64,000 bases of DNA from the NCBI GenBank assembly GCA_907165135.1, contig OU015567.1, positions 15,004,001-15,068,000 on the forward strand, written 5' to 3'. The DNA comes from Oikopleura dioica. Its lineage: Eukaryota; Animalia; Chordata. Under the pieces are notes generated by a model that did not search any database, was not told the origin of the DNA, and saw only the letters and a list, made by a program, of their open reading frames with translations. A program made the position numbers and the translations under genes. Shown in pieces: positions 48,254-55,568 of the stretch (the first letter of the stretch is position 1; every line of letters starts with the position of its first letter).

Positions 48254-49763
48254 ATGTCGGACCCCGGACCGGGTCCATTGTGCACAAGCGAACGATTCTT
48301 CGAACTCATAAAGGAAAGGATAACAAGTCAATACTGTAAAAAAGGATAGACGAACGTAAAATCGAAACAGCAAATGTCAATCATGTTTTCTTTCTCCCTT
48401 TTCCCTCTATACTGTTATCCTTTTGAAGAGCAGTAAAAACTCGCATGTCGAAACACTCGTCCGGCTAGACCCGGCGCTATTAACCTCTCGGGTGAAGGGA
48501 AAGCTCACGCCAATGATGGAAGCTTGCTTCAAAGGAAACCTCGGGCTGGTCCGATTCTTCCTCGATCGCGGCTGCGACGCAAACGAAAAATACGGCGACG
48601 ATCAGTACACGCCGTTGATGTTGGCCGCTCTGGGTGGACATGCTGAAATCATGGTCTCGCTGCTCGAAGCTGGCGCTGATCCGCATGAGAAAAATAGAAT
48701 TGGGAAGACGGCGGCGATGCTCTGTGGATTCGTAGGGATGAAGGAGAGTCATAGGATTTTGAATTGCTGGATCAAGGACTCGCAGTTTATTGATAAACTC
48801 GTGCTCAAGGAAAACTGGACGAAGTAATTAGAAAATTATTATTACTATCAAAATTAAATGAACTTTATTAGCGATCTGAAAAGACGTCTTCGCCGGCTTA
48901 TTTGCCATCCAAATTGCCTCCCTGTTTCGATCATGCAGCGAATTCAAGGATTGAGCGACAACGTTCTCCGAAAACTCATTCCCGTTCTCTTAGAACAAAT
49001 TCCTCGCGAAGCCGAACTGCCCATATGCCTTAGGTAACAGCGTAATTTTGTCGCTACGTGCCCCATCGCGGTGTACCTTGAGGAGCCAGTCTATTGATTA
49101 ATTCTCTATTCAGATTTCAAATTATCTCCGAGACGTTGCGTCAGTTTCTTGCGCTCGGAACGACTGCCAGACGATTTCAGAAGCTAATGCTCAATCATCC
49201 CAAAGCTTATGATGATCTCATTACCAGATGTTGTCTTGCCCTGTCGAATAGGAACGAAATCGCTGCTTTGAAAATGGCTGTTTCTGGTAAGATGATAATT
49301 TAACTTTGAAAAACTATCGAAAAGTGAGATTCTCACTGTGAGAAGCCGCTTGCGGCTTCGAGAAAATAGTGAAAAGCCCCGCAGAGTGCGGCTATAATAT
49401 TCATTTTTGATTCGTTTTTGTTAACTCCCGAAAAGCTGCGTGCGGCTTCAATAAATTAACATTTTAGCCGCGATTTACAGCTTTCTTATTTCTTCCTCGA
49501 AGCCGCAAGCGGCTTCTCGCCCTTGCATTACTGTTTATATTATAAACTTTATAAACCGAAATCTAGGAGAATACACGACGCTAAACGCCGCCATCCGCCA
49601 AGTAATCGGCGATACAAGCGACATCACCCGCCTCTGCTCAGTCTGTTTTGAACCGTCAAAGTACCGCTGTGGAAAATGCACCCACAGAACTGCTTTTGCG
49701 ATTTACTGCTCCCGATATTGCCAAAAACTGCACTGGAAACTTCACCGACCCCTTTGTAAATAA
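48254..49763 (+). CDS. ANKMY2: Ankyrin repeat and MYND domain protein 2
   Basis: Ankyrin repeats (TPMMEACFKGN, YTPLMLAALGG, GKTAAMLCGFVG) and C-terminal MYND finger CSVC..CGKC..YCSRYCQKLHWKLHRPLC. Start codon and first junction (GA donor) tentative. Confidence 0.88.
49340..49518. repeat. Intronic inverted-repeat element with AAGCCGC/GCGGCTT palindromes
   Basis: GAGAAGCCGCTTGCGGCTTCGAG ... CTCGAAGCCGCAAGCGGCTTCTC; the same internal palindrome occurs in the MITEs at 27141 and 49971. No TSD found. Confidence 0.7.
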
Positions 49764-49970
49764 AAGACGCTTTTCCTTTTTTTATGTTTGCTTTTCGGAG
49801 GTCATAAATTCAAAATGTGACTCAAGCGGGAGCGGGATAGCTCAATTGTCTAAAAATTTGCTGATGATCTCTGATGGCGGATAACAGAGCTTGTTTTCGA
49901 GGTCAAATTTGATCGGATTCCGCCGGTTTCAGGATGAAAAATTGATGACAAAATAAGTTAAAAGTGCAGT

Positions 49971-50094
49971 TTTGGCTCGGCAACCTGTCTGGAAAACCTG
50001 AGTCGGGATCTCAAAGATGTTAAGTGAAAAGCCGCATAGCGGCTATTTTTTTAAGGAAGCCGCAAACACCTTTGCTACAGGTTGCTGAGCCCAG
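49971..50094. mobile_element. Older copy of the CTGGGCTC-ended MITE family
   Basis: GGCTCGGCAACCTGT ... ACAGGTTGCTGAGCCCAG; internal AAACCTGAGTCGGG and AAAAGCCGCATAGCGGCT; flanks AGTGCAGT / ATTGTAGT match 6 of 8. Confidence 0.7.
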
Positions 50095-50384
50095 ATTGTA
50101 GTAGCTTTATGAACAAAACCAAAAAAATTTAGCGAAATATGAGTAGAAATTTTACCCTTTCGAATTACGTAAGATGTTGCTCCAACTCTGGGCTGATCTT
50201 TAATCATAATTATGACTACTCGTCAAAAAGGGAAATTCAGACAAAAATTAGTAGTTATGAAATTTGTCAACATCCGCATAATCGAAGTGGTTACGTGCTC
50301 ATCCGTCTCAGAGAAAGGAGAGCGAGCGCCCAGCTGCGGGCGCCATTGCTCCCCGGCTCCTCTGAGCTCGAAGTGATGACTCTG

Positions 50385-50398
50385 GATGAGCCAATGGC
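50385..50398. promoter_or_regulatory. CCAAT-box 14-mer upstream of the KEN-domain gene
   Basis: Identical to 43339-43352; followed by a TATA-like CATAAAAGGG near 50421. Confidence 0.4.
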
Positions 50399-50550
50399 CG
50401 CGCGCTTTCCCTTCCGTCGGCATAAAAGGGAACACCTCAAATCCAGCGGCTCACACTCGCCAATAATAAATCAAGCGAAAAACACGAAAATTCGGAGATA
50501 AAATTTTATGAACAGAGAAGACACTCTTCAAGAAGCTTCCACTAGAAAAG

Positions 50551-51593
50551 ATGATCAACCCTCTCAGCCAATGGACCCAGTTCTGGTATGAAAAAGCACT
50601 TGCGTACTTTCCACAGATCCAAAATCGAATGACAAGCATCCAATCCTCGATCTTCTGGAATCTTCTCCAGCGAATCTTCTACAACCCCGTCATTACCGCC
50701 TTCGAACTCTCAATTCGCGAACTAAATGCATTCCTCGCCGCAGCAGTTGAAAAACTAACCTTCGATTCATTGACGGAAATGAGTAAAGGGGAGCAGCTTT
50801 CACCAGAAGCCCAACGATTTCAAATCATCAAAACAATCCTCCAGGAGTACAGCGATATCATAATCGGAAAAGACCTCTGGCTCAGCAAGAGCGTCCTCGG
50901 AAACGACCTCTATTCGCACCTGGTCAATCCTGAGAAAGTGAAAGACATGAAAAATCGACAGAAACAGTTCAAACAATACAAGGTGAGCAATTAACTATTT
51001 TTAGAATAAATAAAGAATTCGTAAACCTTCAATTTTCTCAATAATTCATTCAGAAATCCGGCCCTCTTGATCTTCTCGCTCTCATCCGAAATTTCCGAAC
51101 CCACTACGATCAGCAACCGCTCGAGCTTCGTCAAAAAGTCTTCAACCACAAAAACCTCGATCACGTGGCCGCCGTCCAAGATTACTATTCCTACTTCGAC
51201 CAGAAGTTCCCGGGATTTTTGCTCTTCGTCTACGATGCCGCTAGTTTTGCCAAATCAAGTGCGCTTGGCGAATTTTACTACAATCCCTGCACAGTCGACA
51301 TCTTGGACTTTGACACATGCTACGCCAGTTTTGCCCAGCTGTTCCAAAGGCACTTCAATCATCTTTTGGACTACGAGCGTTTCAAGAAGCTCTTCGAACA
51401 GACGCTCAAGCAGACGAAGTTCCTCTCCCACGAGATCGTCGTGAACCAGTCCTGGATTGAAGACATGGAAGACAAGTTTGAAATCAAAGAAAAACTGCCG
51501 AAGACTGGGCGAAAAATGTCCGAATCCTCCATGAAGGAACGCGCCTCTCCCATGCGAAAGCAGCGCAAGAACTCTCGAAACTCAACTTACTAA
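50551..51593 (+). CDS. KEN (IRE1/RNase L-type) ribonuclease-domain protein lacking a kinase domain
   Basis: Two exons (intron 50983-51053): FKQYK|KSGPLDLLALIRNFRTHYDQQP..YYSYFDQKFPGFLLFVYDA, matching the KEN pattern Y-x6-DLL-xx-(I/M)RNxxxHY..YF-xx-(R/K)FPxLL. Confidence 0.8.
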
Positions 51594-52065
51594 AGAATAG
51601 CACCATTACAGTAACTGCTACACACTGCTCTATGAATCCCCTCTTCTCTCCAACTAGAAATTGAAACAATCCGGCTGATTGCCCTTTTCTCCTAACTTTT
51701 AGTACAATTTAACATGTGCAACTTTACTTCATCGTGTTTATCATAATTTCCTCGAAAGTTCAATCTTGTATAAATTTGTGATTTCAGTTCTTTGATACAG
51801 CAACACCATTTTGTTAAAATTTACATTGTGCAAATAAAAAATCAAAAAGAACTCCCCTTTTCAATAATTCAGCATACTCGCATATAAACCGTTTTTGACA
51901 ACAGTTTTCTCTATCGAGTAACAGCAGGATATCAGTAGCATGCGTTGATTAGTGCAGGCTGAGATTGACACGCACAGTGCATTAATAATTAATCTCAGCT
52001 CTGAGCGTTATGACATTTCATTTTTGTTTCGTGTGTACAAAAGAGGGACCCCTATCAGCCAAGAG

Positions 52066-52341
52066 ATGGACAGCGCAATTTTCTTCCTCTTTCTCATCGC
52101 CTTATTCATCGTTGGTAAATAAAAAGAAAAATTATGAAAGAGTGAGTAATGATTTCTAGCATCGCTGATGGGGCTAGTTACACTGACGATTGACAATTAC
52201 ATCTGGTGCAAGGTAAGGAAGTTTTTGAAGCGATTACGGACAAATTTCCAGGGCGATAATGATGGACAAGTCTTGGATGGGGACGGCCATATTATAAGTG
52301 CTTGCCCCTCTTGGGACCGGATATCTACTATTGACAATTGA
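52066..52341 (+). CDS. Three-exon 63-aa membrane microprotein
   Basis: Exons 52066-52114, 52160-52212 and 52252-52341 with strong GTAA/AG sites and matching phases: MDSAIFFLFLIALFIVASLMGLVTLTIDNYIWCKGDNDGQVLDGDGHIISACPSWDRISTIDN*. Confidence 0.7.
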
Positions 52342-52887
52342 CTATTGTTTAGCTGATTCACAGTCTGAATTTCAGGCTAACTAAATGAAATGACCCCCTG
52401 TTAGTATGATTTTATGGTACATTTTAAGTTAACACTGAAATGAGAATTTGACAGATTCTCTGCAAATTGAATCTGCAAATTGAAATTTCGAATGTGATAA
52501 TGAGATGAACTTATCAATTTCTCTCTTGGATATCCAGATAGGTTTCCTTTCGGAACTATTATCACTCGCTCGGCAAGCCTCAACGGGGCTAATCTATCAT
52601 CAGCATTTTTCTAAATCTTGTATAAATTGGCTGCGATACAACGATCTCCAAAATTTGGAACATCAACGACTCGGGGGCGCGTTTCTCCACGTTCGATTGG
52701 CTCACCAACATTTTATGACGAAATGTTCCCTCATTCCTGACCTGCCCGTAGCATTTCCTTCCTCTGTATCAGAAATAAAATCGAGAAATAAATCTTCTGG
52801 TCCTTCTTTCATTGAAAAACTCAGAGTCCAAGTTCAAGAGTAATTCTTTCTGTAAGGGTGCGTTTGTTTTGATGATTGTTTATCAGA

Positions 52888-55568
52888 ATGATTTTAAGAC
52901 GTTCGGGCGTGAATCGGTTTCATTTCCAGCAGAGCCGATTTATCTTCTACACCGCTAGAATGGAGAAAATCGCTCGTGAACGATGGCAGTGGACCATGCC
53001 GGAGGACAACACTCCGAAGCTCAAGGTCAACAATTCCCTGACGAGGAATAAAGATGAATTCCGACCTGCTAACGGAAAAACTGTCAAATGGTACTCATGC
53101 GGACCGACTGTTTATGATCACTCACACATGGGTCACGCTAGGTAACAGATTGCTATTGAAAAATTCATCGTTATTGTACTAAATATTCATTCTCAAGATC
53201 GTACGTCTCTTTCGATATCATTCGCCGAATTCTTCGAGATTACTTCGGCTACGACGTGTTCTACCAAATCAACATCACTGACATCGACGACAAGATTATC
53301 AAACGAGCTCGACAGCAACATCTGTTTCAGAACTGGAAAAACTCCAGCCCTTCTAAGGTGATTTCCCTTTTCCTTGCTCTCTTCACCTTTCAATAGGACG
53401 AAGTAATTGAGCATGCGAACAAAGGAATCGAACGTTTCCAAGCGAAGTTTGAAGAAGAAACAGATCCTGATAAGAAAACAATGTACAATAACCACTTGAC
53501 AGCAGCGCGCAACTCAGTTGAGAATTTCGAGTCCATCGAGAAAGTTTTGGACACTTGCGTCGACTCCATCTCTGATTATCTCGATAAACAATTAGGAAAC
53601 GTTCATCATCCTTTTTCCGTTCATCCGTTAAAAAGTGAGGTCGGATTGGGAACCAAATGAAAGGCTCTTCTGTTACTGACAATTCGATCTTCGATGCTCT
53701 CCCTCGATTCTGGGAGAAAAAGTACTTCGAGGACATGCAAGCGCTGAACATTGAAGATCCTGATTGCCTAACTCGCGTGTCAGAGTACGTGCCGGAAATT
53801 GTCGACTTCGTTCAGAAAATCATCGACCAAGGATACGCTTACGAATCCAATGGATCAGTTTACTTCATGGTGGATCATTATAACAACAGTTCAAATCATT
53901 ATTATGCAAAATTGGTTCCTGAAGCTGTCGGTAATAAAGATGCCATCGCAGCGGGTCTAGCTGAAGGAGAAGGTATGTGTTGAATTAGAATTCAGAAGCG
54001 TCATCGTCATTTTTAGGGTCATTGGCTGCCTCTGGTAGTGAGAAGCGATCAGAATCTGACTTCGCTCTTTGGAAAAACTCGAAGCCCGGCGAGCCATCGT
54101 GGGACTCGCCTTGGGGAAAAGGTCGCCCGGGATGGCACATTGAGTGTTCGGTAATGGCGTCTGACATTATGGGCAAAACGATGGACATTCACTCCGGGGG
54201 AGTCGATCTCAAATTCCCGCACCATGACAATGAGCTGGCGCAATCTGAAGCCTGCTGGGGAAATGACAACTGGGTCCAGTACTTTTTACACACTGGCCAT
54301 TTAACAATCGCTGGCTGCAAAATGTCCAAATCGTTGAAGAACTTTATTACTATCAAAGGTGCCCGAGTTAATTTTGCATTTTCTGAAAAGTGTCTTATTT
54401 AGATGCGCTGAAGAAAAACTCTGCCCGTCAAATTCGACTTTCTTTCCTTCTCCACGCTTGGGATAAAACCCTTGACTACTCAGACAACACCCTCGCCGAC
54501 GCTGTGCAATATGAAAAGTCCATTTCCGAGTTCTTTGCCAATATTAAAGCCGCTCTTTTGAACGATGACGGGATCCTGAAAAAATGGGGAGCGCCGGAGA
54601 AAGAGCTCTTCGCCGATTTCCAAGCGGCTCAAAATGATGTCCATGCTAAATTATGTGATAATTTGAATACGCATGGTGCTTGCATGGCCCTGAGAGATAT
54701 TGTTTCGTCGACGAATAAATATTTGGCGAAACAAGAAAATCCTGATTTTAAACTTCTTAGGTAAAATATGAATAATTCTTAAATTGGGGTTGATTTTTGT
54801 TCAGAAATGTAGGAGCTTACGTTACTAAAATCCTGAAATGCTTCGGCTGCATGAACAGTGATGAGCGAATCGGCTTCCCCGCGGAAGGCCAAGCCCAGAA
54901 TCAGAATATGGACCAGCTTGTCGCTCCTTATCTTCAGTGTTTAGCTCAATTCAGGTGCCCTTTCTTCTGCATAATTTAGCATAAATTGCTCTCTTCAGAC
55001 AAGAAATTCGAAATACGACGCGGGGAGATAACTCCGATCTTTCGAAGAAGCTCATGCAAATGTGCGACGATTTGCGGGACATGAAGCTTGTCGATTTGGG
55101 TGTCAGATTGGAGGATAAGATGGACGAAACTGGAAAGCCTATTATTAAACTTGGCAACAGAGGTACTAAACATGCATTTTCTCGTTTCATATTTCGTGCT
55201 AGAACAGTTACTCGCTGATCGTGCTGCCAAGGAAGAAGAAAAACGAAAGAAAGAAGAGCAGAAACGCGCCCAAGCCGAGAAAAAGCCCGAGAAGAAGCTG
55301 AAAAGGACAAGATCGCGTCGATTCCACCAACAGATTGGTTCAAAAAAGAAGAACATTTGAAGTTGTACACGCAATGGAACGATGCTGGTCTTCCGACGCA
55401 TAGGAAAAATCCAGAAAGGTGACTTTCCGCAGTTTTCGCGATTTCATCGTTGAAATTTTTAGTGGCGAAGAGGAAGAAATTCCCAAATCCGCGTTGAAAA
55501 AACTGACGAAAGAGCTAAACGCACAAAAGTCCAAGCACGATAAGTGGCTGAAGAAACAGCAATCCTGA
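52888..55568 (+). CDS. CARS1: Cysteinyl-tRNA synthetase, cytosolic type, with possible N-terminal mitochondrial extension
   Basis: [77 protein letters not shown] intron 53596-53663; apparent 1-nt frameshift at the A-run 55280-55284. Confidence 0.97.

Follow-up and report, generated by a model that had tools for sequence, protein, structure and literature searches.

The KEN nucleases of IRE1 and RNase L are switched on through dimerization that is driven by a kinase or pseudokinase domain. Among HEPN domains, the superfamily to which KEN belongs, an Rx4-6H motif together with a neighboring polar residue and a Tyr constitutes a metal-independent RNase site, and RNase activity requires two adjacent domains (Anantharaman et al., 2013; PMC3710099). 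Lineage-specific expansions of KEN domains apart from a kinase were reported in the same article for Oikopleura dioica and monocots, with the wording "solo RNase L in Oikopleura" (Anantharaman, Makarova, Burroughs, Koonin, and Aravind, 2013, Biol Direct 8:15). In the literature that we searched, we found no further paper joining Oikopleura and the KEN domain and no functional study of any kinase-less KEN protein.

In the present study, we describe a gene for such a protein in 64,000 nt of the O. dioica genome (contig OU015567.1, positions 15,004,001 to 15,068,000 of the forward strand), a stretch that is referred to as the window and in which all positions are numbered from its first letter. 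Organism and architecture class, a KEN domain without a kinase, are the same as for the solo KEN of 2013; that article gives no gene-level description, and the window gene, which is likened to its solo KEN by architecture, may be part of the 2013 set (PMC3710099). Solo KEN proteins as a kind have been known since 2013, and the novelty that had been implied in an earlier note on this DNA is unsupported, the more so as the ortholog of the window protein (P0002, an NCBI O. dioica protein of 322 aa that is 68% identical and the best full-length relative) bears the UniRef name "KEN domain-containing protein". Since the solo KEN has been in the literature for this long, the value of the present analysis does not lie in a discovery but in the documentation of a gene model and in hypotheses that can be tested. 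What is added here is the gene-level anatomy, synteny, selection, and transcript structure of the gene, the observation that the protein resembles IRE1 more closely than it does RNase L, and, in addition, a conserved module at the C-terminus, an overlapping upstream open reading frame (uORF), and what may be the vestige of a kinase C-lobe.

The Oikopleura protein resembles IRE1 in its catalytic residues and in the predicted KEN fold (Z 9.5-10, rmsd 2.6-3.3 A over 120-134 residues), whereas the kinase, luminal sensor, and membrane segment of IRE1 are all absent from it. It differs further from IRE1 in having a Phe at the position of K907, which adjoins the catalytic Asn, and in possessing extra N-terminal helices and a C-terminal extension of ~100 residues, neither of which belongs to the KEN domain of IRE1. 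Judging from this comparison, its mode of dimerization and activation must differ from that of IRE1. The likeness to RNase L is confined to the KEN fold, in which the structural match is weaker than that of IRE1, and the protein lacks the ankyrin 2-5A sensor and the pseudokinase of RNase L (no Pfam match); the ankyrin repeats encoded nearby belong to a separate upstream gene with its own stop codon. Other HEPN RNases, namely, Las1, Csm6/Csx1, the Cas13 HEPN domains, and the HepT toxins, share the Rx4H motif, which is R156-N-F-R-T-H161 here, and none of them gave a significant sequence or fold match to the Oikopleura protein. A conserved KEN protein of this type represents a natural test, in an animal that is amenable to laboratory work, of whether the nuclease is able to work and be regulated without the kinase switch.

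Gene Structure and Transcript 5' End

The gene is composed of two exons on the forward strand, the spliced product of which has 323 aa (Table 1). The donor context is CAA TAC AAG followed by gtgagc, with the GT directly 3' of 50982, the acceptor sequence ttcag ends at 51053, and the motif QYK-KSGPLDLLALIRNFRTHY found in the window straddles the exon junction. RNA reads of a sister lineage pass from 50982 directly into AAAACCGGCCCTCTTGATCTT, which is exon 2 of the ortholog, and, thus, that lineage expresses the gene and removes the intron. These RNA runs derive from a diverged lineage that is 90-95% alike in conserved patches only, and what they confirmed is the junction and expression of the ortholog. 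Expression was also seen in several metatranscriptomes.

Table 1. Positions in the window of the features of the KEN gene.
Feature	Position	Strand	Description
Conserved promoter region	50287..50428	+	GTGGTTACGTGC (50287), CAGCTG, CCAAT (50391), TATA-like CATAAAAG (50421)
Inferred 5' UTR	50458..50550	+	Start placed at ~50458-50462 from homology with the reference lineage
Overlapping uORF	50508..50591	+	uATG in conserved TTTTATGAA, +1 frame, 27 codons
Exon 1 CDS	50551..50982	+	Residues 1-144; N-terminal helical region (~1-80), first half of KEN, Tyr143 (codon 50977-50979)
Intron	50983..51053	+	71 nt, GT..AG (gtgagc...ttcag); position identical in all relatives
Exon 2 CDS	51054..51593	+	Residues 145-323, then stop TAA 51591-51593
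Exon 2 catalytic codons		+	Arg156 51087-51089; Asn157 51090-51092; His161 51102-51104
Exon 2 parts		+	Second half of KEN to ~residue 221 (nt 51284); alpha/beta module ~225-288; basic Ser-rich tail ~289-323
3' UTR	51594..51850	+	AATAAA 51833-51838; contig ends; poly(A) site inferred from sister-lineage contigs

The transcript contigs of the reference lineage begin 68-70 nt before the ATG and ~40 nt after TATAAA, and this genomic start position is common to three independent spliced contigs from three samples. Spliced contigs L008 and L009 encode the ortholog exactly; in the reference genome, they cover 5931/5933 to ~7188 and lack nothing but the 42-nt intron, while contig L005, which originates from a different sample and a different lineage, starts at the homologous position.

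The 5' end bears on the reading that the gene model is incomplete, i.e., that the KEN exons are part of a longer kinase-KEN gene, the 5' exons of which are located at a greater distance upstream or are added by trans-splicing. The splice acceptor near 50515 that was pointed out in the earlier note does exist as an AG at 50514-50515, and a spliced contig that runs from the ankyrin-MYND gene through the KEN gene to the CysRS gene suggests that some RNA crosses the intergenic space; both points speak for missing exons. The contigs that share the start position described above, in contrast, read through the homologous AG in sister lineages, and the site in the reference lineage is AAACGAG (no AG). 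Since the ortholog contigs read through this site, no kinase exon or spliced leader is joined there, and the use of the AG as a site of spliced-leader trans-splicing was ruled out. An in-frame stop codon at 50509-50511 separates the AG region from the ATG at 50551, the reference annotation is a 322-aa gene with two exons, and distant relatives begin at the equivalent Met. The space upstream is as narrow as was previously claimed, with the stop codon of the ankyrin/zf-MYND gene (49761-49763; the Pfam labels are those of its ortholog) lying 787 nt before the ATG. No kinase ORF was found among the upstream neighbors, which are this ankyrin-MYND gene and, upstream of it, a minus-strand gene with an ORF of 900 aa. 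We consider missing 5' exons to be very improbable.

As was stated in the earlier note, a CCAAT box and a TATA-like box lie directly upstream of the gene, and both are kept in two other lineages. The window and contig L001 share 99% identity in the 100-nt promoter core at 50324-50423, as against 85% in the coding sequence and 66% in the intron, and this block is under tighter constraint than the coding sequence. It is unique, with no second copy in the window, and an Rfam search of 49700-52100 gave no match for it.

The uORF has the only uATG, and its TGA falls 39-41 nt inside the main coding sequence. Its frame and stop codon are kept in every lineage of the O. dioica complex that was examined, except for one without the stop, and it is absent from the more distant relatives that are ~48% identical. 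The overlapping uORF may be a translational control element.

Assignment of the KEN Domain

The two exons were searched separately, and whole-protein analyses were performed on the ortholog (68% identical) instead of the protein of the window itself. Exon 2 alone scored 34.6 bits on Pfam PF06479 (KEN/Ribonuc_2-5A; HEPN superfamily), above the cut-off of 23.3 bits, which answers the profile check proposed in the earlier note, whereas a Pfam search with exon 1 alone returned no match, kinase included. The ortholog scored 36.2 bits on the same profile, with residues 112-209 covering profile positions 32-116 of 127, and PF06479 was matched by 12 of the 21 pieces of the family.

In the PDB, the only chains that a profile of the family matched were those of IRE1 (E 6e-4 to 4e-3), and no RNase L chain was hit at E<=1; the family profile of exon 1, which covers the N-terminal region and the first half of KEN, found nothing there at E<=10. 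In the profile alignment, the Tyr, Arg-Asn, and His pair with RTYK...MRNKKHHY of IRE1, and the IRE1 segment aligned to KQFKQYKK.GPLDLLALIRNFRTHY equates Phe140 with F889, Tyr143 with Y892, Arg156 with R905, Asn157 with N906, and His161 with H910. Y892, F889, and H910 are active-site residues of IRE1 (PMC7914947). An active-site Tyr and an Arg-Asn-x3-His (Rx4H) motif at the spacing of IRE1 are, thus, present, and this motif, which had been recognized from the letters alone, aligns to the IRE1 active site.

An AlphaFold model of the ortholog reached a pLDDT of 53 with a 13-row alignment and 67.9 with 21 more diverse rows, and the latter was used. Its pLDDT was 74-94 across most of the KEN domain and the C-terminal region; the loop that precedes Tyr143 was poorly modeled. 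In a comparison of this model with 48,161 representative chains, the best match was yeast Ire1 (Z 9.5, rmsd 3.3 A, 134 residues), followed at a distance by RNase L (Z 6.2) and unrelated helical hairpins (Z <=5.6); in a second comparison, 24 IRE1 entries were at Z 8.4-10.0 and RNase L was at Z 6.2-6.3. The monomer prediction that had been suggested as a check accordingly placed IRE1 first. Foldseek also ranked IRE1 chains first, with non-significant E-values. The all-helical KEN fold is predicted on the basis of this medium-confidence model of the ortholog. Searches of the ESM Atlas by features (whole protein, KEN part, and C-terminal module) or by shape yielded nothing usable.

Regions Flanking the KEN Domain

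In tight structural alignments, residues 40/44-220 of the ortholog model were superimposed on residues 802-963 of human IRE1 with an rmsd of 2.6-3.0 A, and looser alignments extended over residues 1-220 and IRE1 751-963 with an rmsd of 5-6 A. The kinase domain of human IRE1 comprises residues 571-832 (PMC7914947), and the fold match, therefore, begins inside the kinase C-lobe. On account of this starting point in the medium-confidence model, the N-terminal ~80 residues may be a vestige of a kinase C-lobe. The idea of a C-lobe remnant is without sequence support because the exon-1 profile matches nothing in the PDB. The earlier note had likened the EKALAYFP segment to the last helix of the kinase C-lobe; the structural match in the C-lobe lends partial support to this, whereas the residues concerned are ~40-80 (loosely 1-80) and not this segment in particular, with no sequence signal.

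The C-terminal extension of ~100 aa, which had also been noticed previously, is real and spans residues ~222-323. It contains a conserved module at ~225-288 that is predicted to be composed of a helix, a beta-hairpin, and a second helix (pLDDT 86-94 in the ortholog model), and the tail behind it is disordered, the last 38 residues including 12 Lys/Arg and 8 Ser/Thr. No transmembrane-like segment was found in the 323-aa protein, the top 19-residue hydropathy being 1.19. The Pfam searches, the fold, the 5' ends of the orthologs, the hydropathy, and the upstream genes agree on a stand-alone KEN protein, as had been proposed, from which kinase, ankyrin, luminal, and transmembrane regions are all absent.

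Conservation and Genomic Neighborhood

The locus of the ortholog on FN653023.1 contains a large minus-strand gene, an Ank/zf-MYND gene, the KEN gene, and CysRS, which is the order of the window, and there is no paralog of the KEN gene within the window. In a nearer lineage (contigs L001 and L002), the nucleotides of the coding sequence are 85% identical and the place of the intron is identical. The comparison of the window with L001 gave a dN/dS of 0.12 at a dS of 0.60, with similar values for the N-terminal (0.13), KEN (0.12), and C-terminal (0.11) thirds, and the reading frame is intact in every lineage. The KEN gene is under purifying selection.

Beyond these lineages, a search with exon 2 against 1.8 billion representative proteins returned seven matches, every one of which was within the same small family. 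Marine metagenome contigs (L010 and L019-L023) encode relatives that are 45-52% identical over exon 2 and that have two exons, with the intron position and the N- and C-terminal modules as in the window gene. They end differently (...NSYYDFLLR), and the three complete ones have ~290 aa. All relatives, including those with ~45% identity, retain Tyr143, Arg156, Asn157, and His161 unchanged.

These data also bear on the reading of the gene as a decaying, functionless remnant of an IRE1-like duplicate. The N-terminal region, as a possibly truncated kinase C-lobe, would suit such an origin; however, the frame that is intact in every lineage, the low dN/dS, the conserved synteny and promoter, and the expression in metatranscriptomes all argue against it, and we regard this as the least credible of the readings considered. 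Both a dead remnant and an incomplete gene model are contradicted by the transcript and selection data.

Spliced contig L018 (1-4956), mentioned above, corresponds to approximately 48850-54500 of the window and covers four genes on the forward strand (Ank-MYND, KEN, a small gene, and CysRS) with their introns removed. It represents either a polycistronic or read-through RNA or the chaining of neighboring transcripts by the assembler.

Proposed Function

This protein is best read as an active endoribonuclease, since its catalytic site is intact and subject to selection. We consider it probable that the gene encodes a soluble solo-KEN protein under its own promoter, which acts as a metal-independent endoribonuclease and dimerizes through its flanking modules. 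The promoter would direct the synthesis of a soluble protein of 323 residues composed of a helical N-terminus (~1-80), an IRE1-type KEN domain (~81-221), the alpha/beta module (~225-288), and the tail. His161 and Tyr143 would serve as the acid and base, while Arg156 and Asn157 would hold the scissile phosphate, and the products would have 2',3'-cyclic phosphate ends. Pairing would be needed, as in other HEPN enzymes, and, since there is no kinase domain to drive it, we infer that the KEN surface and conserved flanking modules supply the dimer contacts or the regulation. By analogy, a lone KEN domain may be inactive or dependent on a partner because the KEN domains of IRE1 and RNase L are active only under dimerization driven by a kinase or pseudokinase.

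The main rival view is that the protein is a non-catalytic regulator, which forms pairs with IRE1 or another kinase-KEN protein through their KEN domains and damps or redirects the RNase of the partner, or which just binds RNA; a dominant-negative modulator had been put forward, besides an uncoupled RNase, in the earlier note. KEN domains of the IRE1 type function as dimers, and the structural match reaches the part of the C-lobe that packs against KEN, both of which are in keeping with a partner of this type. However, a blocker has no need of the Tyr, Arg, Asn, and His, whereas these four catalytic residues are invariant at ~45% identity and the dN/dS of the whole protein is 0.12; a regulator devoid of catalysis is, thus, unlikely.

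Returning to the active endoribonuclease, a more specific scenario may be offered tentatively, although we doubt that it holds in all its parts. A truncated IRE1 may have kept the last helices of the C-lobe and gained the C-terminal alpha/beta module, giving rise to a kinase-independent dimer and a self-active RNase. Its control would then be exerted through its synthesis, by the uORF and the constrained promoter, and perhaps through the phosphorylation of the tail, and it would function in a conserved form of appendicularian RNA processing or decay, not in an arms race. Here and in the preceding paragraphs, we infer the RNase activity, the dimerization through the flanks, the biological role, and the regulation through the uORF and phosphorylation of the tail from the features described above.

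Downstream and Dispersed Elements

Several minor observations were made around the gene. The 3' UTR contains a block at 51650-51684, CCAACTAGAAATTGAAACAATCCGGCTGATTGCC, that is nearly invariant across five lineages and includes a small palindrome; covariation across these five lineages gave no support for a hairpin in this block. In the spacer before the next gene, a sub-threshold Rfam row for snoZ30 at 51940-52008 (20.6 bits versus a gathering score of 50, E 0.76) is probably due to chance. The small gene downstream, at 52067-52300, begins with MDSAIFFLFLIALFIVG, has a hydrophobic N-terminus and at least one intron, and its start is conserved in contig L003. A palindrome of the form AAGCCGC-N(1-4)-GCGGCT occurs in five copies in the window (27199, 27227, 49343, 49500, and 50029), three of which are followed by a run of T; these copies may represent either a small, dispersed repeat or MITE ends.
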